Positions 10,131 to 62,761 of a stretch of 64,000 nucleotides of DNA are shown here, piece after piece. Position 1 is the stretch's first letter. Each line of letters opens with the position of its first letter. Origin of the DNA: Ophelia neglecta (taxonomy: Eukaryota); assembly GCA_965285935.1 (NCBI GenBank), contig OZ260665.1, positions 59,272,001 to 59,336,000 on the forward strand, given 5' to 3'. The position numbers and the translations under genes were made by a program. Below the pieces are notes generated by a model. The model did no database searches and had not been told where the DNA came from. It saw nothing but the letters and a program-made list of their open reading frames with translations.

Positions 10131-10908
10131 CTAGCAACGTATCTTGCCACGAGAGTTTGTTCGGTTGGGTACTGGAGGCCTGACATATTTCTGGGCAGGT
10201 ACGGCGCCCAGAGTCGAGCTACGCGCCAAGTGTGCAGGGAAGGAGTGGTTGTTAGGCACGATAGGTTGCGGCACAACATAGTGGTCCTCGGGCCGCGCAC
10301 CCACGACGTTGGAGCGGGAGAGACGTACCATCTCCAGCAAATCGGGCGCAGACTGGGTCAACAGTTTCTTTTCTGGGCCCAGTTGGGTGGTGGGCGTTGG
10401 TGCCAAGATCGGCCGGTTATTGTCCCACTGGCCTGAACGCGCTCTTTTATGACGTAGGTCACGTCGACTATTTCCCGTAGGCTTCCTCGGCCCCCGGAAG
10501 TCGTCTGCCCAGATAGGGGTCCCACCACCCGGGCCGTCCAGTTGACTATCTCGGCTACGGGTCAAGTAGTACTTGCCGCGGACACTGTTCCTCCGCGACC
10601 CACAGCGGCACTCGTCCGGGTCGGCGTACTTGGCCGAGGTCTCCATGTCACGGTGGTCGATGTAGTCCACCATCTCCTCATCATCATAGCCTTGGGAGCC
10701 CAGCAGGTTACAGCCCTGCCACTCGTCCTCACGGTTGTTTTTGTTCTTCTTATTTTTACGTTTGGCCCTGCGGATATTGCATCCCGGGGATAGGTTGGGC
10801 CCGTCTTCGATGTCTTGACGTTTGAGGTTCTCCTCGTTCATGGCGCTCTCCTGGAGATTGTTTATCACTACACGCCACTGGTCCAGCTTCAGCTCCGCAT
10901 TACGGCGT
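10131..10908 (-). CDS. SUEL-CUB-CCP receptor exon 8: cytoplasmic tail (RRRNAELKLDQWRVVINNL...RPPVPNRTNSRGKIRC*)
   Basis: Acceptor tttctcttgttgcag|. The phase-2 start matches the TM exon. 778 nt open and GC-rich, containing the 245-aa ORF of the track. Confidence 0.88.
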
Positions 10909-11675
10909 CTGCAACAAGAGAAATAACACGTTACTCAACGCCTAAATAAACTCTACTCGAAAAGCATCATCATGTTAAATCTATTTTATAGGTTAAAATA
11001 ATCGAAACATTGTTTATAAAGGTTAATCTGGATACGACAATTAGGATTCTTTGATGCCTTACTTTTTTCTTTGCATTTGAAGGTTGAGAACAATTTAGCT
11101 GTCAAATAGCAACGAGAAACTTATCGCAATCCCATATAAACGAATTGCGTCAAGTTGAAAGCTCTATCTTGTATATCACAAAGTACTCGTATAGGCTTAT
11201 CTATAGGCATTAACCGTGCACGTGTGCTCTTCGTGAGTGTGTGGAAATATATAGTAATATATAAGGTCTGTGAAGTGGATCAAAGTTTAAATAAATATAG
11301 TTTTATGAGATATACATTTTATCGTTACTATCTTCTCATAAAAGGGAAATCAAATGAAAAAACAAACAAACAAGCAATAGAAACATAGTGACATGTTAGT
11401 AAGACACGACAGTTGACCCATGACCTATACATCTGTGAAGAGCAATATTGCCGTTTGTGAAGAAAAACATTTTTTCGATTGCCAATGACGACCTTATTTG
11501 TCCTTAACCTAAAATGACTGCCTAGTGGACAATCTGCGTATGACATGTTTTATTACAGCATGCAATAATTAAATAAGAATTTTAAAGTATTCAACGAAAC
11601 AAAAGATAGAGTCAAAATCAGCCCCTAAACTGATTAGACAAAAGTAAAATAAAACATTGCAAAGGCGCATGTTAT

Positions 11676-12970
11676 GGGATCATTCTCCCTGTGAGAGCGA
11701 GCCATGACGATTCGGGATGCCCCCCTCCCTGTGAGGGTGAGCCTTGTCTACCCCGGGATGTCGCTCTCCCTGTAAGGGTTAGCCATGTGGAACCCGGGAT
11801 GGTTCTCTCCCGCTGAGAGTGAGCCTTGGCGATCCCGGGATGTCACTCTCCCTGAGCGAGTGAGTCTTGTCCAACCCGGGACGTCACTCTCCCAGTAAGC
11901 GTGAGGCTTGTTGCCCCCCGTGATGTCGATCTCCCTCGTGAGAGAAAGCCTTGTTGAACCCGGGATGACGCCCTGCCTCTGGGTAGGTTCCTTTCGAACC
12001 TCGGGTTGTCGCTCTCCCCGTGAGATTGAGCCTTGTCGACCCCGGGATGTCGCTCTCTCTTTGAGAATGAGATTTTTCTTCCCCAGGACATCGCCTTCCC
12101 TTATAAAAATATAGTCGACCGCGGGATGTCACTCTACCTGTGAGAGTGAGCCTTGTCGACTCCGGGATGTCGCCCTCTTTGTGAGGGCAAGCCTTGCCGA
12201 CCCCTGAATGTCGCTCTGCCTGTGTCAGTGTGAGGGTGGGCCTTGCCGACCCCTGACGACCTCTGAATGTCGCTCTGTCTGTGAGGGTGGGCCTTGTCGA
12301 CCCCTGGATGTCGCTCTGCCTGTGAGGGTGGGCCTTGTCGACCCCTGGATGTCGCTATGCCTGTGAGGGTGGGCCTTGTCGACCCCTGGATGTCGCTCTG
12401 CCTGTGAGGGTGGGCCTTGTCGACCCCTGGATGTCGCTATGCCTGTGAGAGTGGGCCTTGTCGACCCCTGGATGTCGCTCTGCCTGTGAGGGTGGGCCTT
12501 GTCGACCCCTGGATGTCGCTCTGCCTGTGAGGGTGGGCCTTGTCGACCCCTGGATGTCGCTCTGCCTGTGAGGGTGGGCCTTGTCGACCCTTGGATGTCG
12601 CTCTGCCTGTGAGGGTGGGACTTGTCGACCCCTGGATGTCGCTCTGCCTGTGAGGGTGGGCCTTGTCGACCCCTGGATGTCGCTCTGCCTGTGAGGGTGG
12701 GCCTTGTCGACCCCTGGATGTCGCTCTGCCTGTGAGGGTGGGCCTTGTCGACCCTTGGATGTCGCTCTGCCTGTGAGGGTGGGCCTTGTCGACCCCTGGA
12801 TGTCGCTCTGCCTGTGAGGGTGGGCCTTGTCGACCCCTGGATGTCGCTCTGCCTGTGAGGGTGGGCCTTGTCGACCCTTGGATGTCGCTCTGCCTGTGAG
12901 GGTGGGACTTGTCGACCCCTGGATGTCGCTCTGCCTGTGAGGGTGGGACTTGTCGACCCCTAGATGCCTC
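11676..12970. repeat. 41-bp GC-rich minisatellite, ~31 copies, in the last intron
   Basis: Unit ctgcctgtgagggtgggccttgtcgacccctggatgtcgct. Near-identical copies from ~12265 to 12962 and degenerate copies from 11676 to ~12260. It produces the 41-aa-periodic ORFs in the track. Confidence 0.97.
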
Positions 12971-15900
12971 GCCTCTGACATCTCCCAATACCTATTATCC
13001 GATGTCGTGCCTTGTCACGAGCTGAGATTTATATGCTAATAGTTTTCGCCTCATTTGCTCGATTGAATTACAGAAGATTGTGTGCTAACATTGTGTAACA
13101 GTAATTTGATGAGTGTGGCTCAGTCCTTTTTGATGAGCGTGGCTCCGTTCTTATGGCAGTAGATAAGAGATATTGTGTCCGTGAACAGCTACATTTTGGT
13201 AATATGGACACAAGGCTCACTGTACCATGGCGTCTGTGCCAGTCATGTAAGTAAGACTCAGGTCAGACTGTTTGTAACAGCTTATATCTTAAGTATGAGC
13301 CTGGGGCTGTACGTTTAGATCTACTTCTCAAATTTAAGAGTAAAATCAACCTATACATGACTATGAGAAGACCCATTCAACTTGCTTGCAAAACGTCTAT
13401 TCTTTAATTTTTGGAACTCAAACGTTTAAGGAAGTTGCCTTAATCATGTTTTGCAGATATCGATAGTTTTTTTTAACATTTTTTAACCCTTATATAGTTT
13501 TAACCCTAATATTGCTATCGCGATGTATACCGAGATTCAATTTTATGCTAGTAGTACTTGTCAATTAGTTAATTTTTCCTCGAATTAGCATTGATTACGT
13601 TTAACATCTGTATTGGGTTTAAGGCTGCTATTGACACCAGCTCCCAATACATGTCACATGCACGCGTCTTGGCTGACTTATTATTGATACCGATCAGTCC
13701 TATTCCTAGAAATGAACCTAATCTCGGCCATTTGTTAGTTGAACAGAGCAGTTAATACAGTTGTCCTACCTGCCTTATCATCTATAGTTGTTAGGAAGCT
13801 AACATGTCAAGGCGGTGGTTCTGATTGGGACGGCGGCTGTGCCTACCTCTGTCCGACACACAAGCCGCCAAATTGCTCCTTTCAGCCAACCATCAGCTAA
13901 TCAATTATAGGAAATTGAATTTTCAATCGACAGATCCAGTACTTCCTAGGAAAACACAACCGGCTAAAAGCATCCATAAAGTCTCAACAATAGCGCCTCT
14001 CCAGCCATCAAACGACCTACACGAGTCTCACTCACTACAGGAGCGTTACCGTGCTCGCCTTTCTGTATTTTGTGATTATTATCATACCTATGCACTTGCC
14101 GTTTTCTGTTCCCCTAGGATATAATTACATGCATGTAGGTATGGTGGTGTTTATGATAAGTTTATAGATTATAAGCTATGATCATAGACGGTAGCGAAGG
14201 TAGATATACACGGCCAGTTTGTTCCCATCTACACCCAAACAGTGTTCATATCAGATATGGATTCTATTATTAAAGGCCTAACTGTTTTATCAGAAAAGCC
14301 GTACTCTTCACAAAATTGCAAACAGCAGCCATTTTTATCTCATCTCACTTAAAACTCATCTTGATTTCCAAACGTGACTTCTTATAATAGGTCAACCGAG
14401 ATATTAAGTGTCATCTAGTTGGTCAGAGAATTAGACAGTTAGAAAAGTTGAATTCTATAAAAGAAATAAAAGGCTAAGCTTTAAGTTTATTAGCCTAACT
14501 TTTTGAATAAGACTAATAAATAAGTTGAATAAACGATGTACATTCATGTTTAATCATAACAAAGTTCTAACCATTTCGCCAATCGTTCGTCATGACCACA
14601 ATACGTCCTCGTTCGACCTCTGAGGTCCGCTGTTAACAATCACGTATCAGTTTGCCGTGAACCTCAATCGCTTGGAAGGCTTTACAGTAATTCGGCGGGA
14701 GAGTCAAACACAATAATGCAGGCTTTGACTGAAATTTAGATGCATTAATCCGAATGCAGGGGCTTTCCACATTGATTCGCGCCGCGGGATGTTAATCATA
14801 ATTAGGAGCAGGCAAGATCCATTTCAGATTGGGTCTGACCTCACGGCCCCGCAAGTGTCGGCATGTAAGGAGATCAACAGCCCCACCGGAAATAAGGCCC
14901 GAGGCAAGGAAAAGGCGGAGCATGGGTCAAAGGTCAGGAGGCAGACGGTAAAAAATATAGGAGTTAGAGTTATTGTGAAAAGTCTTTAAAAATATTTAGA
15001 TTAAACTGAAATTGAATTGCATACAGGACATGACAGAGAGTTTCCTGATGCCTTTCAATCCCTTGGTTTTCATGCCTTCTGTGAAACAGTTGTTAAAAGG
15101 GCACACTTTATATATTACCAAAATGGAACTGCGAACACGTAAACTAGCCTATAGCTCTAAATTATTCAACGTATAAACAAATTTATCGCTTCATTTTCAT
15201 CCTAGTAAGCGTAACAATGATTTCCATAATCAAGCAACCTTTTCAATTTCAATAGCCTTGCAATAAAGACAAATGGGGTTTCAATTTTGAACAAAATGAC
15301 AAGACGTTCTATCAATATATAAATAGGCTTATATTCCACAGCTATTTATCCTCGTGGTTACCAGTACAGACCAAAAGGGTAATTGCAGCCAATGAATCCA
15401 CGTAGGCCTGCCTGTTAAGTTAAAGTAGCAAAGATGCGTGAAAACAGTTTAAATCTAAATATCTGTAAATGTGAAGAGCGCCTTAATTAAAATCACTATT
15501 AAAACGGCAGATTATGAAGAATAAGTCAATTAACATAAAAATAACACTTCTTTTATCAGCAAGGCGTGCCTTAAACTAAGAATACATACATTCGGTGAGC
15601 GTGAATGATCATGCGCAAACGGATATGACTGATACTCAGCTTATTTTTAGGTGGGCACTGCATTTGCGCATGCTCAAACACGCAGGCGAATGAGAGGAAG
15701 TTATCCGTACCTTCTGCACCACCAAAAAACCCGTTGCCTGCAGCTTAGAGTAGTAAAATAAGCACTTCGATTAGTGACAATTCATCACTTGGAAATAGAG
15801 AGTACAAATCAATCTGACGAAAAGGTAAACGAAAAAAAATCAGCAGAAAGTTAAAATCAAAAGTTTTCGGACAAATTGACTTTGCACCAGTGGGCCCTGT

Positions 15901-15990
15901 TATCATGCAAGCTAAACTCTGCTATAATGAAATTATTTTCTAGTGTAATCTTTAATATTGAAGGTTGCTGAAAAAGTCATAAAAATATTA

Positions 15991-16192
15991 NNNNNNNNNN
16001 NNNNNNNNNNNNNNNNNNNNNNNNNNNNNNNNNNNNNNNNNNNNNNNNNNNNNNNNNNNNNNNNNNNNNNNNNNNNNNNNNNNNNNNNNNNNNNNNNNNN
16101 NNNNNNNNNNNNNNNNNNNNNNNNNNNNNNNNNNNNNNNNNNNNNNNNNNNNNNNNNNNNNNNNNNNNNNNNNNNNNNNNNNNNNNNNNNNN
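15991..16192. other. Assembly gap (202 N)
   Basis: Run of n characters. Confidence 0.99.
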
Positions 16193-18719: not shown

Positions 18720-18795
18720 CTCCTGTGGAAGTATAGTGCGAGCACCAGTAGTAAAGTAATGAGCAATATGGCTGAAACCACTCCGAGGGCTATAC
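18720..18795 (-). CDS. SUEL-CUB-CCP receptor exon 7: transmembrane helix (GIALGVVSAILLITLLLVLALYFHRR)
   Basis: Strong acceptor ttttctctctttccag| and donor ag|gtaaga, 76 nt, phase 1->2. About 22 hydrophobic residues followed by a basic stop-transfer sequence. Confidence 0.9.
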
Positions 18796-21700
18796 CTGGA
18801 AAGAGAGAAAATAAAGACTTACATAAAATGCCTCCAGCAGTAGAGCTATACCAGTTCTTACCTATAAGGGTCCGCCACTCTTGTTTTAAGGTATTCTATC
18901 GGGGACACTTATTTATATATTACGTACCATGCTGTACAAACAGTAAGCTGTAACAGGAAGTCTTAAACGCTAGAATGAGAAAGTCAAAATTCTTCGCACG
19001 CCCTTCTTTCGCTAAATCATAAATATTTGCATAATTATGAAAATGCAAATTTGGTTAAACTATAATATCTTAAATATGTTTAAATAGTCTTGGTCTTTAT
19101 ATACTTAAAATAACGACCTAATAGATACTAAGACTTTTCAATATTTCTTAAACAGCTTCATATGTACATGCAAAAATAGACACTTTCCAAACGGACATAA
19201 AGTCCAAGTTATATCCAGTTTGTAACATTCTTTTTTACAATATCCAGAGAAATAGACGGCGTGGAAGGATTTGGACGAGCGAGAGGTCTTATCAAAAGTA
19301 TAAGCCTTAGTGTTTATCCCAAATGGGCGATGAAAAATTCAAATAACTATTAACAATAATCTCAAAGAAGTGTACATGTCATAAAAATATACTATTTTCG
19401 AGATATAAAGACGGATAAAGAGCTAAATGAGGTCGAAACTTCTCTAAAAGAATGGTCGTTGTAATGGGACAGACCAGTGGCGCCTGTTTATATAGTTAAG
19501 GATGCCGAGTTATTAGGGTCTGACCGGAGTCGATGTCGTCTGCTTTGAGCTATTGGCGCGGGTAGTGAGGGTCGGTTAGGCGAGGCTCCATCACTCTGTA
19601 TTGGCGACGGTAGAGCGGGTTAGAGGAGGACCAGGCAGGCCCACACCTCCTAGCCTTGATTTGACTGATAACTCAGATTGATGCTCTGACTATCGGGCTC
19701 AATCGCTTTCTCGCCCCTCCATCACCAATCACACTGAGAATTACCCCTGCCCCGAATCCCGAATAAAGCATTTACCAATACCAAAGTCTGCCAACTAGAA
19801 ATCGACTAGGATCTATTTAATGGTCGGCGGAGATTTTCTAAAATTGACACATTAAATTTTCCTCCTCCCTCGCAAATTGTGAACGACAGTGATGCCGATT
19901 TACAACTCAACAACCGGCCGCTAGAGGCCGCCCGAAATGATCTTCAATATATCACTGGGTCTTGGTTGAAGTCATATTAATTGTTAGGTCTATCAACTGT
20001 ACTGGTTCTTACAACATAGTTGTTGAGAAAGTGTCAAGAAGAATTATTACAAATAAATCATATTCCCTGCAAAAACTCTATCAATGGGGTGATCTCTCTT
20101 GTAAGTCTTAATTCTTAATGTATTGAGTTAAGAGGGACTGAAAATGCACTTTGAAACATTCAAATCGCGCGTACTTGTTCGAAAACAAATTTCCTGTGTG
20201 TAGTTTGCCACTTCATGCAAATCACACGATATTGAATAGTAAACCGGTCATCAAAGAAGTTATTTTCGGTTCAGTGGAATATTTTGTATGCAAAGGAAGC
20301 TTGTCTTATTTGCCTAATGTGAAAATTGGATGCTATGATATGATCTTAACCCTTTAAAGTCGCCTTACAAGACTGGCAAATGGTTTCTTTTGGTATGGGG
20401 CTTATTCCATCGGCTCGAAGCAAGAGAGTTGCTGCTTACGAAGCGGCACCGCAGGGCTATAACGCCGGCACAGGTCTGTAGCTGGCGACCTGACCCTACA
20501 TCCTATTGCCCGGATTTAGAAAGGCTAGCAAATCTACTCGGCAGCCTAATGGTGAATCCTTGTTCACTTCCGGTGATGTATAACAGGTGATTCGTCGTTT
20601 TAGCAGCTCACCTTCCAAATACCACGCTGGGACAATATTAATTCAAGAGCTACCCACATTTATTGTGATCTGGGCGTTGAGCTATAGGTGGTTGAGAATA
20701 CTTTGTTGGGATTTACACTCCATGACCGTAAACACCATATCTTTGTCTGAATGAAATGCTTTACATGCTAGGATGAGGTCTCCTGCCTGATTAAACGGTC
20801 TCGAATTGGGGATTTCCATCAAATACATAGTTTGGTTTCTGGGTCTTTTTCTTCTACAAACAGCGGTCTTGGTGCCTTCTGACATGGGGCGTCGGTCGGT
20901 GTCAACTACCAAAGGGCGGTCTGGGCCCCTTTTGGCAGGAGGCTCAGAATGTTGTCACCTAGCAAAGGTTATCAAAATTACTAACCAAGGGGTAATGTAT
21001 ACTCTGCAGGTTCAAATGGGTATTTGCGGACAAATACTTCACCAGTTTGTAAAGAATAACATATAATTCCATCAGCTTAAGGTCAGTCAACTTACAAATG
21101 ATGACTCTCTTTCAAACTGTTCCTGTTTAGAATCTAGTTTCCGGTTGCCATAGCTTTCGCAGTAAAAAACAACAATGGCAATGAGCGATCTATTCCGCTC
21201 ATCCTATAGAGCTAGCGGCTTCAATCACAATAAAAGCGTAACTGATTTATTTTATAGATTGAACATTCTATTGCACCACCGAGGAACTTATATATCCCCA
21301 ATGCACGTGTCCCCTTTAGACTGTAAAGGCCTTTTTCACCCATCTTGAAATCTTGCGTTTATTAAGACAAATGCATCTATAGCTATACAGTTAAAAGAGA
21401 GCTGAATACAAGGTTATTCACAATATTAGGGCATTGGAGATTCATGTTTATAGGCTAAAATTTTCTGATGATTTCGGTCCGATTTACTGGTCCATCCTTG
21501 ATTAATCATTTTGCCTTGTCTGCCGGGTATACACTCCGGGTTAAGCTGTCTTGTATGATTATAAACGCGGCTTAAAGAGTTTTAAGCAAGATTAGCGCAT
21601 TTCCATGATTTAAATAAGAATTATAGGTATTTGCAATCGATCTCTCACGCGGCCATCAAACCTTCACTTGGTATACATTCCTTTAAGCGTCATTCTTATA

Positions 21701-24538: not shown

Positions 24539-24628
24539 CAACAAGCGATCCCGAGCGGTCCATGATATTTTGGGTACTCTTTTTGGTATTGGTAGTAGTC
24601 GCCGGAACAGGAGTAGTAGGGGTAGGCG
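24539..24628 (-). CDS. SUEL-CUB-CCP receptor exon 6: Thr/Pro-rich stalk (APTPTTPVPATTTNTKKSTQNIMDRSGSLV)
   Basis: Acceptor ctctttcatttcag|, donor g|gtaagt, 90 nt, phase 1->1. Mucin-like composition in the expected juxtamembrane position. Confidence 0.87.
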
Positions 24629-29013: not shown

Positions 29014-29205
29014 CTACACACGGCACAAGCAGACTGCTCCAGTAAGACCCAGAAGCACATCGGATCTGTCGGAGGGATACTTGGGTTCCTGAAAACACGA
29101 ATCCCTCATCACAGCTTGCGTTTGCGAAGAGAACATCATCCTCTATAAAATAGTCCACCTGGCCATTTTTTAAGTCTTCTAAGTCGGGACATCCGGGACC
29201 TATTG
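29014..29205 (-). CDS. SUEL-CUB-CCP receptor exon 5: sushi/CCP domain (CPDLEDLKNG...CDEGFVF.G......C....YWS....PCV)
   Basis: Four Cys plus the conserved NG, C-x-x-G-F and W of a CCP module. Acceptor ccattttcag|, donor g|gtgagt, 192 nt, phase 1->1. A second in-frame acceptor 6 nt downstream (start 29199) is possible. Confidence 0.9.
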
Positions 29206-29410: not shown

Positions 29411-29767
29411 CTTCAAAATATATGAAGAAGCCTCTCTGTGTGAGCGAAGTTTCCCCGGTACTGAACCGGAGTAAGGCCGTATTATCGTCCACGTCGATGA
29501 TCTGTTTGCCCAGCGAACCACAGTCTTTAAAATATACACGATTCCCGGCACTTATTTCTAGATAGTCTGAGCAGCGGGCTGCTTTCTTGACGTCCAGCTC
29601 GAAGTCAAAGATGGTCAGCCGTACTGTTTGTCTCTTCTGCACGGAAATCTTCCAGCGGCATTCGGCGTCCATGTAATACTTTCCAGGGTAGTTTGGGCTA
29701 GAGATGAATCCGCTGTCATATAAGGTGGGACCGTTAGGTCCAAAACACGCCCGGTGTATGGAACGAA
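29411..29767 (-). CDS. SUEL-CUB-CCP receptor exon 4: CUB domain
   Basis: SGFISSPNYPGKY, CRWKI, LTIFDFEL, CSDYLEI, CG and RGFFIYF are canonical CUB motifs. Acceptor tttttatttccag|, donor aag|gtttgg, 357 nt, phase 1->1. Confidence 0.95.
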
Positions 29768-30446: not shown

Positions 30447-30569
30447 CGGTGAAGGTGCTCGAGTTGCTCTTGGAGGTTGTCGACGAGCGACCTAAATCTG
30501 GAGCCATGACATTGTACGAACTCTCGCCAAGATTCGCCCACTTCACATTAATACACCCGGGTGCCATCA
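30447..30569 (-). CDS. SUEL-CUB-CCP receptor exon 3: putative (cassette) linker exon (VMAPGCINVKWANLGESSYNVMAPDLGRSSTTSKSNSSTFT)
   Basis: Acceptor ttgtttgcctcag|, donor g|gtatgt, 123 nt, symmetric phase 1->1, open in the required frame. No domain homology, so less certain. Confidence 0.6.
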
Positions 30570-32050: not shown

Positions 32051-32344
32051 CTTGCACACATTTGTAAGTGACTCTGAGGAACTCCTCATATCCACAAGGG
32101 TCCCCGAAGAGAGCTGTATTGACCGCCAAAGAACATCGATGTTTCCCTGCGCATCTTCCGTTGAGAGGGAAGTGTACGTCGATGTCACAGTTTCTCTGAT
32201 AGGGTACCAGGCAGCGTACGGCGATACCCGTGTCGTTACGACCGTAACGCGCAGTCTCGAAGACGATGTTCTCGTCCTCCCCGCACGCGATTTCGAACAC
32301 TGTATTGAAGCAAGCGTACTTCTCGATCACAAGGGAACTCCGCA
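32051..32344 (-). CDS. SUEL-CUB-CCP receptor exon 2: SUEL/rhamnose-binding-lectin (Gal_lectin) domain
   Basis: Eight Cys with ARYGR, C.GK..CS, FGDPC and L.VTY.C motifs. Acceptor ttttttgtactttcag|, donor aag|gtatta, 294 nt, phase 1->1. Confidence 0.94.
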
Positions 32345-48800: not shown

Positions 48801-51800
48801 TTCTTACACCGAGTTCGCTTCCCAAAACGCAAATAAAAGCCACTCTTATGCGATCAATGAGTGACTGCGTTATACGATTTGTTCGGCTAATTGTATATTG
48901 CAAGGGGAATTGGGAATTTCTGGAATAGATTTATCAGGCAAAAACCTAGATCATGCTTGTTTAGTGTCCCTGAAAGAGAAACAAGGACTCTTAGCGACGT
49001 ATGCGCAGGCGCCTCATAAGCCCTGATATTTCCGGCGCGATAGTTCAAATTGTTAGAGCACTTTCCTTTTGAACAAGAGCAGCTTTTGCTCCTTGCCCGA
49101 AGGGTGAAATATCAAGTGACTTGTCTAAAACCCCAGTCACTTTACAGTAGAAATATCCGATTGCCAAAACGGGTTAAAGCGAACTTGGGAGCGGTCCTAA
49201 GTGGCCCTTTACAGCGCACATTTCACTGGGGATTGCTGTGGGCAGACGAGTGACATTCTAGCACCACTCTACAGCAGACCGTCAATTCTTGTCCATATAA
49301 TACAATTGTTGTAGTGGTGGAATATGTGTTGGCTCGAATGAGTAAGTTCAGTTGCACCCTGCCTCTCTGCCCTCTAACCTTGCCTCACGGCAATAATGTT
49401 GGATAGAGGTCTGCAGGTCCTTTTATTGTGTCAAGGAGGACACATGTAATTGTCATGAATTGACAAGAGGACGTAGAAAGGTCAAGCAAATACACTCATT
49501 CAGGACTTGTTACTATCTGAAATAGACTAGTCAAAGTTCTTGTTACCAAGACTATACAAAAAAAATACTATCTCTATAATACGAAATGTAATGTATGGCC
49601 TTATTTATGGATATAAAATTAATAAATGATATTGCAATGCGACATACAAATCTGGAAAACTGTTAGCACCTGATAGAAGCAAACCGGAAGTTAGAATATG
49701 ATCTATTTGTGTTGTTAACAGTTCAATCTGAGCTTATTGAGCTCATTTCACTGAATCATATATATAATCCGCTTCGAAGACAAATTCGTTTCTTCCTCAA
49801 TTACTTTCCGCTCAGTCCGATGATTGAGTGTTGTTGCTGCCTTGAATGCTTCTCGTATCCCTTGTTCACTAGTTGATCTAAAGCCTGGCAAGTGTCAAAA
49901 GCACTGCTTCTGTTCTTCGATGGTTTTGGATAATACTGATCGACCTGACAGAATCTAGGCCAGTCCAAAACAGCCTCTGTCTCTTGCCATTGCAGTCGTC
50001 TGGGGTAAGAGAGGGATAATTGTGTATCTGTGTCCACAGAACAAAAACCTGTATTAGGCTACACGTTCTTCCGCAAGTATGCTTGCTTTATTTAGAGCAC
50101 GATGATCTAATCAATCATTTTTGATGGCAGGGGCTTTTGATTCTCTTTCTTATGTCCCATTCATCGCCCACTGTAGAACAATGTTCCGGGATTGCTAGCC
50201 CATCAGAGAAGCGTGCTACACCCAGGTTAATATAACTATTAACGCGACGCGATTTTTGTGTTTGATAGAATATTTAAATCAGACATATAATATGATAAAG
50301 GCACTGCCTCAAATCGAGCGCAGTAGAGCCTGGTACATTATATTCTGACTTTAAAAAGGAAAATGCTACTGCGCAATCTTCATGTGCGGTTCAATGGTGG
50401 AGGTTACGACGTTTGGTCCGTTTATTGGTCTAAGTGCAGGAACCAGTATGGCCGCTGTATATAACAGATGGGAGGAACGTTGATAGGTATACAGGCCAGT
50501 TTGATTCCATTTCATTCCTCCCATTCTATTTACACGCATGTTATGGTCAGAGCCTCGCTACAAAGCGGCTCCCGAGCTATGCTAAAGTAAAAAGAACGTT
50601 AGTTCTATAAATCTCTCTTGCCTTTCTCGAACTAGGTGCTAATAAGTATAAGATATATGGTGGTATGGCTGCTATTAAATTATCATACACATTTTAGCAA
50701 CAACTACACGTACAAAAGTCTAATTAGGTCAAATGTAAGGAACATATAATACTGTCGTAGTGAAGTGGTCGGGACTTGACTGTTGTCACGTGTATATCTA
50801 ATAGGTTTTCACTACAAGCTAATCCATTATTGCCTCGACGCCTTTGGTCAATCTGCGAGCCACTTACTTCGGGCACTACTATATAGCTAGAATGGAATTA
50901 TAGCATAATACCTCACAACCGGGTTTCCTCTAATCCACCATGCGGAAATCCCACTACAGCGATTTTCAATGCTCTTTTTAAGCCCATATCGAGTAATTCA
51001 CTTTTGGAGACAGACCTGTAGAACTAAACTATAAACAAGAACAATGACAAAAAATTGTGTACATAAAACTAAGAATGCTCCTATGCCGAGGTGCGATGAA
51101 TTTGCTCAGTTCTCATATTTGTATTATATTCCTGCAGGCACTTGTTGTGGAGAATATTTCAACTGAAACAATTCAAAACATAAAAATAAAACATATAAAC
51201 GGGCACTCCGATACAACAGAAAATATTTCAATTTTTTGTTCACTGCATTGATCAATGCCGTAATTAATCTTGCAGGAAAAACAGTCTTGGAAAAATCCCA
51301 CGATAATGTTGTCCCCTGTGGAAATGACACCCTCGAAATCTGTATAGGATTGTTTTTACATGATAAATAAAATGGTTCAACCCACTATGATTTGCGGTGG
51401 AATGTTTATTTGCATTACCTTAGCTCGAAGCATTGCTTTCAGAGCCTATACACAACCTACGCAGGTCTATATAGAAAACATGTTTACACCCTTATGTACT
51501 TCTAATCGCCACTGTATACGGAATACGTCTATAGAAATGGCCAAAGTAATCTCCTGATCACACCTTTGTATAATATAGTGTAGACCATAGGAGTGATTTG
51601 TTTGTGTGTAAGGTCGTGAGTGGGGGGGGGGGGGTTCTGTTGATTGTACAATGTCTATTCTCTTCAGGACAAGAGTTGTCAGGTAGGAGATTTCCAGGAA
51701 TGTGGAATGATGGAAAATGCATGTTATTAATATGATAGGAATTGTTAAGCATGCAAGACTTGCTACAGCTGCGGAATCTCCTTCGGTACGGCTGATCTAA

Positions 51801-54800
51801 ATGGCCATCTGCTTTGATATATTTGCTATTACAATTGTCATTGATCTATTGGGTTTGGTGCTCAAATAGATCGGCCCTGGTTAAACAAAACCTGCTCTGA
51901 CAGTTTGCTTCATTCTCAGTTATGATTAGACAATGGTGTTACCAGCTCCGAGGTCGGCCACAGTCTATATAAGAGTGAGCAGCTAACGCCACACATGGCA
52001 GAAGACTGTCTAACATTACATGATGACACACAGTCAATATTGCCACAAGACAGCTGGTTTCTGGCCATGGCCCAACACCGTTTGATTCTGATATACTAAT
52101 TGTTCAAACACTTCCCAATGATCAAACAAATATAAGTTGACACAACCAAGGCGATTTATACACACATTAAACTGGAACATTCACGAACACTTTCCCATTC
52201 ATTGCATGTGTACTTTTACCATTTTTGCCTTCTTTATTAGTTTGAACACTTTCTAAGGGCAAAGGTTCTAGAACGACAATTTTGTCATCGGTGAAGAAAC
52301 TTCAGAACTTCGAGAGCTTGAAGTAGGCATTAGTATAAAAAGTCACACTCTCAAGAACATTGGTCACCCGAGGCGTATTGTCTTGTCGAAATCGATAAGA
52401 TATTATATCTGTGAATCCCTATGCTCGTCACAATAAGCGACATTGTCTGGTAAACTAGAGATTGTAATGGCGGATCTTCTGTTCTTCAGTTATTAGTGTC
52501 TACAGGCGATCCGCTTGATTAGACTCGCCAATTGACATAAAAGCATTGCAGCCAACGTAATGTAAGATAGCAGACTGAGTCCAACTCTGATCAATGTTTA
52601 TACTCTCAACAGAGATACCACCTGCCATACTCTCATTAATTAAAACGCCTGGCTCCAATGCGATAATCATAATTTCTGAGATGGGAGTACAAAGAAAATG
52701 GTGGGCCTACAACGCAATAGGGAATACCTACAGAAGCCCCTGCAGAAGGAGAGATTAACTGAGTCCTTTGAAACGCGATATATGACCATTGTCCATTGCT
52801 CTTCCGATTTGATCCCCTGCTGTAGACTGTATTCGTTATATACAGCCGAAAACAGGGGTTATTGGTAGACTTGTGTCTGTCCTTTGGGATCCTTTACGTA
52901 TTATCCAGGCCCAATCCTCTCTTGGGAGTGCATTTGTCTTCGCCACAGAAGTGAAAGGAAATATTGGAGCAGCGTGAGCCACCTTGAGAGTGCACCTTGA
53001 GGCCACAGTCACCATTTACTGCTACGAACATGAACGTCGAAATGATTCTACTGAGCCCCTCCTTCTCTCAAAGCAGGCTTTATATAACACATCAGATAGC
53101 AGGACAAAACAGGTTACATTTAAAGTAAAGCTTCTAAATCGTACAACCGTACAGAAATATTTTTTTCTTTTGGGGGAAGTTATTTCTTTCCAAATTGCTT
53201 AAATAATATTTAAATTATGACAACGAGAACTATCTAGGATATATGTATAGGTGTGACATCATACTAGACAACCAGTAGTCAGACTGTGACATTTTTCTGG
53301 CTTGTCACACTTTGGAGGCGATTTCGTGGATTGATTGTACGGACACAGAGAGTCTCCCCAATCAAGGAGGACGGGGGGGGGGGGGGGGGGGAGTTACGTC
53401 CTGCTGGCCTGATGGGATGAAGATCCTCCCATTGACTAAGCCTCGCCACTTCCTGCCCGGCTCTTAGACTCCAATCGACCAAATGGTTTAAAACCAGCGT
53501 CTTCTTAGCCACAAAAGGCGGTTGGCCTCTGAGCATCACTCTGTCCATTTGTCAATCTTTATTGCTGCCCCATTGCTTCTGGACCGGCCGAATAAATGGA
53601 AAGTGAACCGCCGTATTTTATCAGCCGGGAAGTCATTGGAGAAGAAGCTGTGCCTGGAAAAAAAGGCTGCGTTGTGACGCGTTTTGAAAATGGGAGATGA
53701 TTGAGACCGTAAGGGCGCCAATAAACTGGTGGCTGATGGTCGGTGGAGCGTGTGCCCTCAATGGCGGAAACAGATGAACCTACTCCTGTGCAAAACGTCA
53801 GAGATGGCCGCGCTGAAAGAATCGGCATCTTATCTTCGGTCCATAGAACTGTGTTTGCATTGCGGGTCAATGCCATTACCAGATGTCGAGAAGAGGGTGA
53901 CTATACTCTCGAGAAGACCACTCAAACAAGTACTCCTGTACTCTGTCATAACAGAACATCACGGATACAACCATGTCAACATCCATAACCACAAATAGAG
54001 GCTACTTAGGCTGCGGATTCGGCAAATGGTTCTGCCAAAGAACCCAGTAATGCAGCAAGCAATAAAGTTACATTTATAGTCTGTGGCATTGGCCTCGTTA
54101 GAGCTCCGAGCAGATGTCATATTACATCGAGTAAGCAAGGGCAACGCATTTTGTCTTTGAAAGTGTTTGCTTTTGTGGTAAATTATAATAGACAATGAAG
54201 TGAAATGATAAAGTGCGGGTCTGGAAGTTGTTCGATTCACATGTCGAACGACACATGTAGCAAATGGCAATCGCCTATATCTATCCTCTGTGTGAAGCAA
54301 CTTTCATATAATCACATGGTTTTTAATGACAAGCCAGCTTGAGTACAGTGTGATATGAAATGTGTGATTAAAATGATATCTGTAACATGGGGTCAGTTTT
54401 CTTTTTATAGAACTGTTCTAACAAAAGTGGCATATAAACTAAACCTCACTCATCCTGGCTTTAGAATGGAATGACACTCGAGTATTCATCAATTGAGACC
54501 GAAGGCCGAGGGTCTTAATAGCGGATCTAAACACGTTTAATTGAGCTATAGAGGCCAGTCACTTTAAGTTTTGATATTAAGGATGGCAGTTTTATCATCT
54601 TTGTCTTTGAATAATTGAATCTAGCTGTCATTCCAGTATAGCGCTGGATCTAATCGGGGGAAAAATCATATCTGTTCGTATCTGTCGCGGGCAGAAATGA
54701 GTCGGGGTAACTCCTGGACATAGCATCGACAGCCGGTCTGACTATGATTCTGGTCACAACACAAGGACGTGACACTGCATCTAAAGTCGGACAAGTAGAT

Positions 54801-57800
54801 TTACTCAACTCACTCCAGATCACGGGTTTCATCGGAAGTCAGTCGGGCAAGACAATGACCCAGTGTAAATACACATCGGCATGTGAGATAAGCCCAGTTA
54901 GCGCCATCTTTGTTTTTACGCTCTGGCAGACGCTTCCTTTTATCGCCCGGAAGTCGCTTCAAGTGGCACTTACGAAACAAGACGCTCAGCTCTAATTGTA
55001 CTCGCGAGTACTCACAATGACCATTCCAAATTAAACAAAAGTGTCGCCATCACGCCTATCTACCTTTGAATCGTTGATGAGATGACGAAAATGGTGACCT
55101 TCCAATTATATGTATACTTAGTGGAAAGACAGAAAGTATGCAATGTCGTGATTTCTGGGAAAACGCGTTCAGGCCTTCATTGTTATCAAATAGATGTAAA
55201 GAGGGGGCTATTGCCACCATTAAAGTATTTGGTGGGCACTTTTACCCATTTGCTATTGTAGTGTGATAATTTAGACCATAAACTTCGATTGCTATAAATT
55301 GCCATGATGTCTGAACAATATTTGAACATAAAATGGATCATGGCCTGCCCATAACGGCCCTACTGGTACTACCACGAATACCACCACGAGATACTGACAG
55401 ACAACCGCAAGCGTTCGGCTTTGACACGCCTTAAGGTCAGCAAATAATAGCACAAAGTATTGATTTTTACAGTAATTTCGATGTTATAAAAATAAATGAA
55501 AAAACTATAGGGAACTTTCATGTTCTTTGAATGTATAGAAAAACCTTCGATCCAGAAAATGTTTCAATTATATAGATTTGGCATCGCCTATCTATAGGAG
55601 GCTGACAAGTTGTCGAGAAAACCATCTGTTAAACTATAAGCGGCGAACGCACGCAAGAAGAATGATGAATAGTCACGCTGGTTTGATACATGAAAAGAAA
55701 CATGTTCTCATAACTGTGTTGATTTGAATTGATGGTGCTACCAAAATCTTGGCATAGATATATGGCTCGAAAGATGTCCTATGACTGCCTTGACGGTTGT
55801 AATCAGTAATACTTTTTTAATAGGAGCAGCAGAGATGTAATTTTCAGTCTTATCATTTTATTAATAATTCTACCCAGACTGGACCGAACAAATACCATCA
55901 TTTTCTGTTTATCTGGGCTAAAGAAATATGACTTCCCACTCATGTGTTGCGTCTTTCATTTCAAAAACGGCAGAGAGGAGTGGAACCAGCTTGCGAGATA
56001 GGAGGTCTAGGGAAATTGGGGCACGATCGAGGCGGCCCTGAGAGGAGCTGAGCCATAGCAGGAGGGGTTCTGGGAGTTCTATATCCTGCGGCCCCTGGAG
56101 TAGGCTCGCCAGGAAGGGCGTCTTGGTGAGGGGCCGAGCTTACGCTGAATGCGGCAGACGATATAAGCAATGTCAGACACTCGGCGGCCCTCAGCCATGC
56201 AGGCCAACAGGTGGTTCCTTAACCTAACGTTCTGCTCAGACGACCACCTTCAGGCCAGACCAATGACACCCCGCAGACGGTAGTTAATCATCTACAAACC
56301 AAGGGTGGAAGGCCTTCTGGTATTTTCTTTTTGAATACCATTGCTTCATTTTATGGAGCCTTATATACAAACATAAAGCCCAAGGAGATTCCATCTCCGC
56401 CCATTAAAGAGAGCCTTCCCTCGGAATCAAGCGGCACTACCAAGGCCTCCACAGACTATTTCGGTGATGTTTAGCAGTCCCATGGTGGGTATGAATCCCG
56501 ACAAGTCTTATGATCTTCTTTGCCAACTTTTCCACAATTTCCACAAATCATTGATCTGTGTCTCTATTTTTTCAACCATTGAATCTCCTTTTCCGTACTG
56601 CCTATCTATAGGCCTTCAAGCTGTAGGAGACTCGATGCCGTTTCTATTAATAGACATGATACGATATTTTTCCCCGGGCAAGTCTCAAATCTACACCGGC
56701 AACGCCCCAGGAAGCCATCAAGAAACGAGGACTACATCCATCCAGGAGGAAACTCGCACAGACAACAGGAAAAAGCTCTCAAACCCTGACCAATACCAGA
56801 AAACACGAACATTACAAACAGATTTGTTAGAAAGGACGAATTTCAACCGCTTTTGAACTTCTTCCTTAGATTATGTTGAGCATCAGTAATGAACATTAAA
56901 CCTTTTAGCCGCAAGTTAGACGGAAAATGTACGAGACTTGCCCACATTCTACGCCCTTGAAGCAAGTAATCTGCAATGGTCGCTACTGTTGACCTCCACA
57001 TTCAGCATATTTGAGTTATGGACTGTGATGGCCGATGAGTACGGAGAGAAGCTTCGCTGAAAACCGTCTCTCCTACTCAGCTCCTGGCCACAATATCCAT
57101 TTTTCAGCTGTCAATTTCCACCAGAAACGTAGATTATGAAAGATTAAACCAACTTGTGCAGGAAATTCACTTAGGCGGCTATTGTATCGACAAAAGGGCG
57201 CGGGGGACGAGGTCTGTCACTCCCTGCTACTATTTCATTGCCAGATAGCATCATCAGGCTGAATTGACACGTCCAAATGACCATAGTTATGGTGCAGACG
57301 ACATATCAATTGTAGCGTCAGTACATTACTGAGACCAATATTTGATCTTACGGCCTCTTGTCCACTTTTCCATTGCGTGCGATCAACACATCACCGACTT
57401 CACGGCACAATGATACCGGATGATTTGCAATGAATGGATTTTGGGAAGCAGGCAATTGCTCCATTTACCACATTCTCTTCTTGAAAATTTGGCTCTATGG
57501 TCTTACAGATAAAATTTGACACAGTTTTTGTAGGAACTAGGAATGCTACCGGAATTTTATCATAGCTTTCCGTATCCAATTGTCTGGCGTTACATAAATA
57601 GTTTTGAAGCGCCAAAACAACCGTGACCTTGATAAGATACAGGCATACACCAACAACTCGATTTTTGTGCTTTTTTCACCATATTTTCGCTTTTCATTTT
57701 TTATAACAATTGAATGAGAGTTGTAGTCAGTATTGGCATTCGAAGTTTAGGTGCCAAATTACCAACCGACTAAGGATTTGAGCTGTTTAACCGAGGGTGG

Positions 57801-60800
57801 GGATTACAAATGAGTTGGCAAACGGCCTCCTAGGTCGGGGTAGATGCCAAACGACATGCGAGCCCTCCATTGTGGGCTCTAAGCTGTTACTACCACACGA
57901 ACTTCCGTTTGACTTTCGTGACTTGCCAAATCTCGACTTGGGGAGATCGACAGAGCGTCAATTACACGGCGCTCTCTGTCTGACTCGCGTGTCATACCGC
58001 CATTGTCTCCGATAGGTATTATCGAATAATTTGGGGAAAGGGGGTTGTGTACGTGGATCAAGGCCCTACGACCCCGGTATATTGGTCCAACATCGACTTA
58101 CCTAGGCCTGTAACATCTCAGGCTGATACTTATAACCTCTGACTCGATATAAGACGAGAAAGCGGTCAAAAGTCACAAGCAAACGGAGAACTCTATCTTT
58201 TATATCTAGCCAATCACTGCAAGAGGTATTTGAGAAAAACCGAAAATAGCATACTATAATAAATAAATCTGGCCAACAAACATAGAGGGAATCAGATAAG
58301 ACAGTCAATAATGGTAAATCCACCCGTCAGTGCTAAATATATAACATAATATTATTATCTAGATCAAATACTGACACAATTCTCTATTCTCCGCGCTGTT
58401 CAAACATATTACAAACATCACTTTGAAGTGAAATGATTCATTTCGATATCCTAATAGGCCTGACTAAAATTATTTATGATATGTGCGTGGCGTTTAAAAT
58501 GAACTTCCCTGGGTTTATCGGCGGTAGCTATTATAAGCGTGAAATTTGGTGTAGATATCTTATCCGACGGCATTACTCGGAAAAAAAGAATGATCTATGA
58601 TGAAGCTTCGATTCCAAAAGTGATTAATTACATATGTGGCTTATTAAATAGTTTCACAAGACCTGCTGGAGAATGTTTTGCATACCAACTCGTGGAGAAT
58701 GTATGTGGCCTCGTACGTGAGCCGTGGTTGACCAAGTGCGACCAAACATCACGCAGAGTAACGTCAGTTCTCGCGATATCCCACGTGATTTATGCGAGCT
58801 GTTTAATGAAATTAACCTGTAGATAGCGGAAACTATACAAACATATACCCAGATAGCCTAGAATGATAGGAGACACGAGTACAGCATCTCTTATCTTACA
58901 TTAATAGTATTGGCAACGTTAGGCCCCTGATAGCGCCCTATAGACGCAAAACTATACAAAACTAGCACAGGCATCGTATCCGGTGTCAGCAGGGAGCAGA
59001 GATACCTGCTCAGTCGACCTGTTGACATCTCATCTGACGAGAGGAAAATGTGCTTTGGAATGTCTTTATTATCCAATAGATTTAAAAAACCAATGTTGAA
59101 AAGTATCATACTGTGCCTGCAATGTGTCAGCAATGTGCCTACATTACTCAGAAACAGAATAGGTGTTTCCTGCTCCGCGTTTTGCACACGCCTCTCTGGA
59201 GTCTGGCGGAACGCCACCCCACCTGGGAGGGTAATCACCCTTCAAAACAGACGTCCTTCTTTTATGATCAATAAAATCATGCTACTTGCTCTAAAATGTT
59301 TTATAAAGTCCCACTTGCCGAAATGTTAAAATAAGATCGACTTAAGCTTTATTATAAAGATAGCTATAGGCTTAGACTGTACAAATCTGATATGCGTGAC
59401 AGCTTACAAACGTAGGATGTAAGCCTATATATGCCTGCAAGCCGAGACCTATAGCTCGGGGGAATATTACTCTATTGTTGTGGAATTAAATGATACTCGG
59501 TTTGTTATCCAGACGAACTTGGATTTGCCATTGATTACTAAAAACGAACACTGATTACTATCTGGTCTTAAAAGCACAATGAATTATAAAGAAAACGCGA
59601 GGTTAAAGAAATGTTATATCGCTAACCCATTAGTATAGAAAACAAACAGGGTGTTTGGAGCGGGAGCGAGGGTGATCTCGGGGTATCACTCTATAATCTC
59701 CCTTGTCATTCATGTCGAGGATTCACCAGGGACGGCCACCGAGGCAATTACATTTCCACGGCGTTCCATTTGGACAAATTCATCGTGGAAATGGTGAAAG
59801 TGGCATATCAGCTTCGGCTATAAATCCTAGGTATTACAACGCTCATGAGGTAGCCCTTGAATAGTTAGCGGAGATCGATCGCATCCGATACAAAGTTAAG
59901 CGCTTTCTTTCAGAGACAAATCACAGACTCAACATTGGTAAGAAATAGCCATTGGATGAGATAGAACTTCGTGGAAAATAGAGTTTGCTCTCAGCTGTCA
60001 TGAAACTACAATCTTATAGTCTTGAAAGTATAACAGTGCTGCAGGTCTGGACTGTGAGTAGACGTTAAGGATATGGTCTGCGACAGGTTGTTGATCTGTT
60101 TAGCTTAAGCTGCCATTGTGGGCATTGTGCTGTAGTGACTTAATGTAAATAGGCCTGAACTAGTCTAGTTATCGCTTTAGCACTATTTAAGCACCATGCC
60201 AATATTTTGGCGATTCCTTTGGCTTATTTCCAACACGTACTTTGTGTAAAGGTGAGCAGTCTAAACACTTCACTCGTCGCTTCTCGAGAGGATACAATTG
60301 GCATATGAGAAGAGCCATTAAAGTTTAAACTGGTGTGCCGAGAGTTGTCTTATAGGGTCTAGGGAGCAGGTGCCAAAGCTCGAACTGACTGCAAATCTAC
60401 CCAAACTCCTACATTGAGCTACATGATATACAGCGGGCGGAGTAAAGGCTGAATTCTCGACATAACATATAGCTGAAAACTACAGAAAATTGGACAAAGG
60501 AACAAACTCAATCAAGGAGATAGGGAGCGTCGTGGTGACGAGGGAGCAGCACTATTTACCTCCGGTCATTGAGTTGCACCCCCCCCACCTCCCATTCCCC
60601 TTTCATCCTCCTCGTACATTACTGATTTGCCCAGAACTAAGAATTCTGATTTAAGGCAGTGGATCTTTCTTTTCGACCAGTCATTATAACTGGCACGCCT
60701 CCCTCACTATTGACCGCACAAATCAAATTTCTGTCCAACCTTTGGCCAAATATGATTTATTTTGCCACCAAATAGCCCGCCACTCTCCAAGGTGGGCAAC

Positions 60801-61785
60801 TCTTAAGAGCCACGACAGCAATCAATGGCTTTCAATTACCAATTTAATCTGCGAGACAACAACAGGTCATAATTATACCTGCCACCGTACCTGACATATA
60901 AATGATGGTTTACAAAGATAGCTATATATATATATAAATAAAAGCATCTTGGGAGGTTTTGTGGCAAATGATTGCCTGCAGGAAGTTTGGCTGTCCTTAA
61001 TGCCGTACTGTATTGACAGGGGATACCATCAAAGCGTACAAACAATCGAACACTTTACTTCAGATTTTTCCTTCAAATTGCAATAAAACGATACTGATAA
61101 ATATATAATCTAACTATATAAGCTTATTCTCCCGTGCGAGGCATATAAAAAAGGCTTGTATGGCCACTCCAGACATACGCCCTTGTCCTACTTGATAAGG
61201 AATATAGCTTTATCATCGGCCAGTATAGATAAATAACCAGGTTGCCATGATATAAATAAGTTGATGACTGGCTTAAAGGCAACAACTGTTTACAACGAAC
61301 CAAGTTCTCAGGAGAAGAAAGTTCTATCTCCGGTAGTATCACCCTTGATAACTGATCTAGGACAATAAATGACATGACACAACTTGACAGGGCACTGACA
61401 AAAGGGATAAGTGAGAGAAACAACCAAAAACCGTGTAAAGAAACACGGCCATGGCATTCTTATACCAAGGCACCAAAGTCAATTAATTCCCCAGTAGACC
61501 GAGCGTGTCTTGAGGAACGGTGTCGGCCGAATATTTCACACCATGAATTTATTCAGTTATGTCAGCACTCACATCAATACAGCCATCCTCGCTTTAGGTC
61601 AAAACGCGAACCAACGTTGAAATAACATGGATTTACTAAGTTCTACATTCATACTTTAATATATGTTGTAATGAATGGTATTTTTGCCAGTGAAATATCG
61701 CACTGATCTACAAGTGAATTCGTATTTTTGTCTTGCCTTTTTCTCGCATTTTGCTTCCAATGTTAATACATCATATTATTGCTGT

Positions 61786-61910
61786 CACAGGGCCTTTTAA
61801 AACTGAAAATCTCCCATATAGAGTCACTCTATACTATATAAAAATAACTTATTTTTATATAGTATATAGTGATTCTATATGGGAGATTTTCAGTTTTAAA
61901 AGGCCCTGTG
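61786..61910. mobile_element. Palindromic (foldback) MITE with 8-bp TSD, P-element-like termini
   Basis: 62-bp arms with only 2 mismatches around one central base. Flanked by the direct repeat attgctgt at 61778-61785 and 61911-61918. Termini CACAG...CTGTG. Confidence 0.9.
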
Positions 61911-62682
61911 ATTGCTGTTGTATTATTAAATAAACAACGAACAGTTATACTTTTATTTATTCATTTAAGCAGGGTAACCTGGCCAGTTGTAGTGTTTTTA
62001 AATCTGAGCCTGCCAAATCTACAGACATTGATGAGATAATGTAGTCTGGTTAAGAAGAATAAGACAAGGACGCCCGCAGTGCAACCTCCACGATCACAAA
62101 GGAGAATGTAATGGATGGCTGGTATGAGCTTCAAGCCTATATAGATTTATAATAGAACGGTTTTGACCCCGAGGTTTGGTACATCACATACTTCATACCT
62201 GGTCTAATTTGTGATGGCAGGCGATAAGAGAAAGGTTCGAAGTGCACATACAGGTGTATTGCATTGTGTGTATACTCCAATGTTAATCTGATAACATATC
62301 AACAACCAACAACGCACATAGTCCTGGGTAACTACATGGCTTAAGACAGGTAGATTTCAAATATCATTAAGTGTACAGGCACGTAGATCGTGTTTCCAAA
62401 CTGTCGAACAGGATACACTTTTTTAAAGTCCTCTTTAACGAGAATTGAATCACGTATTTGCTTAAGGACCAGGAGTGTCCTTAAAGTCACCTTTTTGTAT
62501 CTGTTATATACATATCCCAAATACCTCCAAATCAAATCCAATAGAAATGAGGGTACAATTTCAAAATAATATACGCCTACTTTATATTCGATAGCAAACA
62601 GTCCAAACTAGACACACAATAATAAGACCTTTAAACATTCCCCTACCCCTGAACTCTATTCATATATGTACAAATCACTTAC

Positions 62683-62761
62683 CTGTGACGAGAAGAGTGG
62701 GCCAAATGGTTATTAAGGCAAGTATCGCAGGACAGGTATTCCTTAACCAAGGAGGTTCCAT
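62683..62761 (-). CDS. SUEL-CUB-CCP receptor exon 1: signal peptide (MEPPWLRNTCPAILALITIWPTLLVT)
   Basis: ATG in strong context (aggATGG), hydrophobic h-region, consensus donor cag|gtaagt. Phase 1 joins exon 2 to give ...LLVTVRS/SLVIEK, a plausible signal peptidase site. Confidence 0.85.

Follow-up and report, generated by a model that had tools for sequence, protein, structure and literature searches.

Domains of the SUEL (rhamnose-binding-lectin-like) kind are known from the latrophilins (ADGRL) and EVA-1/EVA1C, a CUB domain that leads directly into a sushi or CCP module is known from MASP, C1r and C1s, and NETO, LEV-10 and SOL-1 as well as SEZ6 and CSMD are proteins that cross the membrane once, have a regulatory tail and carry CUB (and sushi) domains. 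Here, we analyzed a stretch of 64,000 nucleotides (nt) from Ophelia neglecta (GenBank assembly GCA_965285935.1, contig OZ260665.1, positions 59,272,001 to 59,336,000; hereafter, the window), in which an original prediction made from the letters alone had placed a gene for an unnamed receptor with SUEL, CUB and sushi domains on the minus strand. We conclude that the locus is a real, intact and single-copy annelid gene for a type-I membrane protein consisting of signal peptide, SUEL domain, CUB domain, CCP module, stalk, membrane helix and cytoplasmic tail, and that it has orthologues with the same architecture in other annelids.

Compared with the described systems, the protein shares with latrophilins and EVA-1/EVA1C the SUEL fold with its eight cysteines and its YGR and DPC motifs; the lectin domains of ADGRL1-3 are matched by the SUEL head in the PDB with E values of 1e-5 to 4e-7. 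Like the C-terminal domain of EVA-1, moreover, its SUEL domain lacks both the Glu and the Lys that bind sugar (PMC2430599). In contrast to the latrophilins, it has no olfactomedin, GAIN or 7TM domain and only one membrane helix; in contrast to EVA-1/EVA1C, it has no second SUEL domain and no EVA1 C-terminal domain (the tail gave no Pfam family); and its CUB and CCP modules are absent from both. The direct succession of CUB and CCP corresponds to the CUB2-CCP1 pair of MASP, C1r and C1s, but there is no EGF domain, second CUB or protease here, and the protein is membrane-anchored rather than secreted. NETO, LEV-10, SOL-1, SEZ6 and CSMD resemble it in overall layout, whereas the window protein has no LDLa module (one of the NETO/LEV-10 type was not found with Pfam, which was run exon by exon throughout) and just a single CUB and a single CCP, and its SUEL head is absent from all of those proteins; past the shared domain types, there is no sequence relationship. 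The closest proteins are one from Arenicola marina and one from Capitella teleta, which have the same order of signal peptide, SUEL, CUB, CCP, stalk, helix and tail, with 54-70% identity in the ectodomain and 38-40% in the tail, and which share the tail motifs, apart from the C-terminal end of the Capitella model.

A seven-exon gene with orthologues in other annelids

The original prediction joined eight exons into a coding sequence of 1989 nt, or 662 residues, in which a linker separated the SUEL from the CUB domain. All eight minus-strand stretches are open, have AG/GT edges and have compatible phases (0,1,1,1,1,1,1,2), and they do add up to 1989 nt; however, support from other species was found for only seven of them, the exception being exon 3. 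The supported model therefore contains seven exons over 52.6 kb, with 1866 nt and 621 residues, and the predicted order of parts stands except for the 41-residue linker. Pfam confirmed all three predicted domains, i.e. SUEL_Lectin in exon 2 (E 3.3e-10; 40.6 bits vs. a cut-off of 31.4), CUB in exon 4 (E 3.9e-18) and Sushi in exon 5 (E 4.2e-4; 21.1 bits vs. a curated cut-off of 20.7). Exons 2, 4, 5 and 6, which encode SUEL, CUB, sushi and stalk, each begin and end in phase 1, and these phases together with the Pfam assignments bear out the claim that each ectodomain module occupies one phase-1/phase-1 exon. All searches and folds used single exons or database orthologues, never joined exons.

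The evidence that carries the model comes from three orthologues in which all parts lie in one chain. The Capitella protein (ELT89217.1/R7TCM1; 598 residues with SUEL, CUB and tail; P0090) was reached via a cluster matched by a profile of the tail, and a search with it gave both the Arenicola protein (709 residues; P0104), which is listed in nr as 'Gal-binding and CUB domains containing receptor 18', and a continuous open reading frame (ORF) of 616 residues (P0105) on a 2559-nt Logan contig from run SRR19075496. Because in-frame stop codons precede its start codon, the latter contig looks like a spliced transcript. Exons 2, 4, 5, 7 and 8 are the sole matches of these three proteins in the window. 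Identity to the orthologues is 63-70% in exon 2, 57-61% in exon 4, 42-61% in exon 5 and 37-40% in exon 8, and exon 7 is 100% identical to Capitella. At the Capitella locus, the same exons are found in the same order within 3.5 kb, and one 252,735-nt contig of another assembly carries both the CUB and the tail ORF on the same strand, 17.3 kb from each other, compared to 18.5 kb in the window. Thus, the gene is not unnamed as originally predicted; its orthology leads to a protein that has a database name and for which we found no published characterization, and its description as uncharacterized holds.

The remaining exons are supported by a contig from a related worm (ERZ25069296 ctg20897), which aligns at the DNA level to exons 2, 4, 5 and 6 in blocks that end 3-14 bases from the exon edges. 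For exon 6, this conservation covers 24533-24635, and the SGSL(I/V) motif is also present in the Capitella and Arenicola proteins. Following the related contig 24 kb further upstream gave a colinear counterpart of exon 1, 30 kb upstream at positions 14405-14482 of the related locus, that retains the ATG, the length of 79 nt and the donor CAG/GTAAGTGA (slash, exon edge) and has 16 of 26 residues identical. The similarity of exon 1 to the N-termini of the orthologues scored at noise level and, therefore, we relied on its conservation in the related contig. Within the 31.6 kb scanned, exon 1 is also the only phase-1 candidate running from an ATG to a GT that combines a 9/9 donor match with a hydrophobic core. 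In exons 2, 4 and 5, the proportion of non-synonymous differences (pN) to the related contig is 0.084, as against a synonymous proportion (pS) of 0.83, which is saturated.

No counterpart of the proposed exon 3 was found in the three full-length orthologues or at the Capitella locus, where the intron at this position has 540 nt and gave no match. The orthologues have no residues between the end of SUEL and the start of CUB, and the related contig shows no DNA conservation across the proposed exon while the neighbouring exons are 75-80% identical. In the 2283-nt intron that contains it, open AG..GT segments of 60-300 nt that preserve the frame occur 57 times by chance, the proposed exon being one of them. 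Leaving it out keeps the frame and produces a junction that equals those of the orthologues residue for residue in length. These data suggest that the proposed exon 3 is probably intron sequence, and we regard a species-specific cassette exon as improbable. The lesson for annotation is that an in-frame exon of plausible look can be the chance product of a long intron.

The assembly gap, which is the single run of N in the window, touches no codon, and the reading frame is independent of its length. In the Arenicola protein and the 616-residue ORF, the membrane helix continues straight into the tail without missing residues, and in Capitella the helix and tail exons lie 0.9 kb apart on the same strand; because the orthologues join helix and tail directly and the Capitella exons are this close, a hidden exon or a misjoin at the gap is argued against. 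The phase-2 donor of exon 7 is also shared with Capitella. On the acceptor side, the conserved RRR of the tail is preceded by Y, C, S, S or H in the genomic tail ORFs of five species (P0001, P0003, P0005, P0006, P0009); codons for these residues can end in C and, therefore, together with the following AG/A fit a yCAG/A acceptor. If so, the position of the phase-2 intron before the tail exon would be conserved across species.

The public models of this gene differ from ours in several respects. Neither the Arenicola nor the Capitella model has the linker exon, and each includes a small number of additional residues close to the membrane helix that seem to be differences of annotation. The tail aligns through the C-terminal KIRC of the Arenicola protein, so that this end is common to the window and Arenicola, while the Capitella model ends differently. 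We note that the Capitella model (KB311465.1) is without a signal peptide and has five extra residues after the membrane helix, and that the Paralvinella palmiformis model KAK2151438.1 (JAODUP010000363.1; 347 residues) covers no exon other than that of the tail, to which a spurious N-terminus and a C-terminal extension are attached. The public Capitella and Paralvinella models are truncated or split, and public proteomes contain no more than fragments of the tail. At the Paralvinella locus and at one ENA locus, the upstream exons lie outside the 10-kb flanks that were examined. A match to the membrane-helix exon upstream of the tail in another assembly contains stop codons and was rejected as a chance match.

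Lectin-like head, membrane helix and tail

Aligning exon 2 to the structures 5h4s, 2zx0 and 8djg showed that it has retained the eight cysteines and both motifs, YGR and DPC; the exon is also 87% identical to its counterpart in the related contig. In functional rhamnose/galactose lectins, sugar binding requires a Glu directly after the first cysteine (Cys1+1) and a Lys in loop 2, and by sequence the window protein has neither: at Cys1+1 there is a Phe where latrophilin and CSL3 have the Glu, and the loop-2 sequence GTYKYL has a Glu at the position of the Lys, with an adjoining deletion of one residue. The Phe and the Glu are common to all orthologues. In mouse latrophilin-1, the substitutions E42D, E42Q and K120R dramatically reduce or abolish rhamnose/galactose binding, and it has been argued that receptor-borne domains of the SUEL kind bind non-sugar ligands (Vakonakis et al., PMC2430599). 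Carried over to the head described here, these mutagenesis results would predict a comparable loss.

The CUB exon matched 37 exon-sized ORFs from other assemblies with 42-85% identity, and the alignments reach its last residue in all except one, which is a shorter fragment. Its best PDB relatives are cubilin, PCPE-1 and the CUB2 domains of MASP-1/2 and C1r. The motifs DFELD and C-x-D-Y-(L/V)-E are conserved, and the third acidic position of the Ca site is not retained among the orthologues. In the sushi module, the four cysteines and the Trp are invariant across four species. An AlphaFold model of this exon reached a mean predicted local distance difference test score of 46.5 from an alignment of four sequences, too poor for a fold search, and a profile of the four species was instead searched against the PDB. 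Of the 28 matches, 26 were chains with CCP modules, with MASP-1 CCP1 as the best (E 1.4e-4), and the last two, with E about 1, were chance matches.

Exon 7 encodes a hydrophobic helix of 24 residues, all 24 of which are identical in Capitella, while 18 of the 24 codons differ; over the 72 nt, 20 positions are changed, all 20 synonymously and none non-synonymously. The Arenicola helix has a single difference, R/K at the final residue.

The tail has 258 residues and belongs to no Pfam family. AlphaFold predicted a confident helix for its residues 2-33, continuing from the membrane helix, followed by disorder. The exon matched 12 exon-sized ORFs with 33-46% identity, including a hypothetical protein of Paralvinella palmiformis, and a profile of the tail recovered only 25 clusters among 1.84 billion representatives, all of 130-347 residues and, where named, from annelids. 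Across 19 sequences, the conserved islands are KLDQWRVVINNLQ, EDEWQG-NLL, SRRNS, GKY-L-RSRDS-L, R-R-RSGQW(D/E), T-SAPDLL, RSSTLG and the C-terminal KIRC. In a first alignment of 13 sequences, the R, S, G and W of R-R-RSGQW(D/E) and the SAPD of T-SAPDLL were invariant.

Non-coding conservation and place in a receptor family

Coordinates of the exons, the gap and the conserved non-coding blocks are listed in Table 1.

Table 1 Exons, assembly gap and conserved non-coding blocks (positions are those of the window)
Feature	Position	Strand	Description
Exon 1	62683..62761	minus	Start codon and signal peptide; 26 codons + 1 nt, phase 1 at end
Exon 2	32051..32344	minus	SUEL/rhamnose-binding-lectin-like domain, phase 1/1
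Proposed exon 3 (linker)	30447..30569	minus	Unsupported; probably intron sequence
Exon 4	29411..29767	minus	CUB domain, phase 1/1
Exon 5	29014..29205	minus	Sushi/CCP module, phase 1/1
Exon 6	24539..24628	minus	Thr/Pro-rich stalk, conserved SGSL motif at end, phase 1/1
Exon 7	18720..18795	minus	Membrane helix, phase 1 in, phase 2 out
Exon 8	10131..10908	minus	Cytoplasmic tail (258 residues) and stop codon
Assembly gap (N)	15991..16192		Inside intron 7, between exons 7 and 8
Intron 1 blocks 1-5	33446-33523, 35871-36044, 38749-38852, 40108-40298, 41086-41214		Colinear with related contig
Intron 1 blocks 6-10	41757-41994, 45071-45174, 47169-47415, 48297-48485, 48639-48942		Colinear with related contig
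Intron 1 blocks 11-15	49097-49179, 53468-53820, 54817-54960, 59707-59812, 60707-60897		Colinear with related contig
Intron 5 block	27987-28055		Colinear conserved non-coding
Intron 6 block	20283-20355		Colinear conserved non-coding
Upstream block, 63 nt	62945..63007	minus	184-246 nt before ATG; 82.5% identical to relative, colinear

The introns contain 17 conserved blocks of up to 368 bp in introns 1, 5 and 6; those in intron 1 are 68-81% identical to the related contig. Together with the upstream block, all 17 have the same order and orientation as in that contig, with identities of 68-83%. Given that synonymous sites have reached saturation between these two species, we infer that the blocks are under constraint. 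In tblastx comparisons, they contain stop codons in all frames and show no frame preference, and these properties, together with overlapping ORFs that belong to no Pfam family, rule out hidden exons or a nested gene. The three blocks tested, two intronic ones and the upstream block of 63 nt, are single-copy in the genome; for the upstream block, no match was found elsewhere in the genome, including at the clustered relatives described below. The blocks are probably regulatory, the intronic ones being candidate enhancers of this gene and the upstream one a candidate core promoter or element of the 5' untranslated region.

We note some further features of the window, which has ~41% G+C. At 11728-12966, intron 7 contains a tandem array that repeats a G+C-rich unit of 41 bp ~30 times (82% matches) and yields two spurious ORFs of 183 and 208 residues without a Pfam family. 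Downstream of the gene, a 106-bp tandem repeat is present in 2.7 copies at 1776-2051. Scans of the window with Rfam and for tRNA genes found nothing.

The protein does not stand alone as originally implied, because at least 138 further places in the genome match its SUEL exon with 27-39% identity, mostly in a roughly 1-Mb cluster at C5:92.6-93.6 Mb, and weak CUB matches lie just downstream of these SUEL matches. The clustered family shares the order of modules and the design of one module per exon. In contrast to it, the gene described here is single-copy, lies on another chromosome, extends over 52 kb, falls on a separate branch of the tree and is conserved across annelid families instead of being expanded; its sushi, membrane-helix and tail exons have no detectable paralogue in the whole genome. 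A single paralogue of the CUB exon exceeds the threshold in this genome (C7:42758113-42758454; 35% identity); as it is preceded, ~230 nt upstream, by a weak SUEL-like match, this locus is a candidate for the closest paralogue apart from the C5 cluster.

In a tree of SUEL domains, the window, the related contig, Arenicola, Capitella and P0105 form one clade with 100/99 support, which a branch of 1.66 separates from 11 paralogues of the same genome. Identity is 57-70% to the orthologues versus at most 39% to paralogues in its own genome. We conclude that the gene is a separate, single-copy and conserved branch of a large annelid SUEL-CUB-CCP family and the orthologue of Arenicola receptor 18 and Capitella ELT89217.1. 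All named matches are annelid (Arenicola, Capitella, Paralvinella, Lamellibrachia). A word-based full-length search found no orthologue in molluscs or other spiralians and, because of this type of search, absence outside annelids is only moderately supported.

Proposed function and competing explanations

Our working hypothesis, which as a whole (annelid gene model plus mechanism) we hold with moderate confidence, is that the protein is a receptor for a protein ligand, and our best guess from the sequence is that it would function as a protein-binding co-receptor. Because the two residues that latrophilin-1 cannot do without are exchanged here, with the same exchanges in every orthologue, the lectin-like head would no longer bind simple sugars; if so, the ligand of head and CUB domain would probably be a conserved protein. 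The membrane helix, which is invariant under heavy synonymous turnover, probably packs against an intramembrane partner, which would be a second copy of the helix or a different membrane protein. The tail would form a juxtamembrane helix followed by a disordered chain with basic-Ser motifs (RRNS, RSRDS, RxRSGxW), SAPDLL and the C-terminal KIRC, and it probably acts as a phosphorylation-regulated platform for docking and trafficking. Long introns with conserved non-coding blocks are usual for developmental or neuronal genes, and the many blocks found here suggest tightly patterned expression.

Several points weigh against this hypothesis. The argument about sugar binding moves results obtained with mouse latrophilin-1 to a domain with only ~30% identity, and the invariance of the helix would equally fit a requirement set by lipids or by the trafficking machinery. 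The motifs of the tail are read as possible basophilic kinase sites, a sorting signal and a C-terminal docking motif from their patterns only. Splicing in this species is inferred from conservation and orthologues because its sequencing runs show only DNA: three runs of one study were found, of which none is recorded as RNA and which contain mostly intronic words and, therefore, represent DNA. Moreover, among open-access papers and preprints, we found no report of a ligand, partner, expression site or phenotype for any member of the family and no description of the Arenicola receptor series, of the domain combination or of the Capitella and Paralvinella entries (in PMC13094222, 'cub' occurs only within reference DOIs).

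Among the alternatives, a more far-reaching one proposes that this single-copy, conserved gene founded the annelid SUEL-CUB-CCP superfamily, that its product acts in neural or developmental tissue as a helix-coupled co-receptor or as an auxiliary subunit whose ligand is a conserved protein, and that the hundred-odd clustered relatives are later offshoots in which the layout of the ectodomain was retained and the tail is a different one; we consider this doubtful. It is unlikely, in our judgement, that the protein is an auxiliary subunit of a channel or neurotransmitter receptor in the manner of NETO, LEV-10 and SOL-1, with the CUB domain contacting the channel ectodomain, the helix packing on channel helices and the C-terminus binding a scaffold. 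A CUB domain on a protein with a single and fully invariant membrane helix, a conserved C-terminal end with basic-Ser motifs, and long introns rich in conserved non-coding blocks, as is typical of neuronal genes, would all fit such a subunit; however, the protein has a single CUB and lacks an LDLa module, the third acidic position of the Ca site in ligand-binding CUB domains is not kept in the orthologues, and the likeness would be one of architecture only.

An immune pattern-recognition receptor of the kind that the expanded clustered relatives may represent, whose SUEL head would bind microbial rhamnose/galactose glycans and whose tail would trigger defence, we regard as quite unlikely. SUEL/rhamnose-binding lectins are commonly listed among annelid pattern-recognition proteins (PMC5117596), and a family of at least 138 SUEL exons, mostly in one ~1-Mb cluster, is a pattern typical of recognition receptors. 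By contrast, the gene considered here has a single copy and shows strong conservation (identities of 57-70% from one annelid family to another vs. at most 39% to paralogues), unlike fast-diversifying immune genes, both residues that would bind monosaccharides are replaced and fixed across orthologues, and the tail is unrelated to that of the cluster and has no TIR, death or ITAM-like module. Finally, that exons of two or more genes or of a decaying pseudogene were joined by reading frames alone, as the span of 52.6 kb, the first intron of 30 kb, the gap in intron 7, the DNA-only sequencing runs and the one unsupported exon might suggest, is highly improbable and already largely refuted by three orthologues with all parts in one chain (one on a transcript-like contig), by the ordered Capitella exons within 3.5 kb, by strong purifying selection on every supported exon and by the conservation of exon 1 with its donor.

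The gene provides a clean, cross-checked model for a large annelid receptor family that is recorded in databases without a known function. Its branch behaves like a conserved housekeeping or developmental receptor and not like an expanding recognition family. With its invariant helix, a head without the sugar-binding residues, a tail rich in motifs and introns rich in conserved blocks, it is the most tractable member of the family for finding a ligand and a signalling route.

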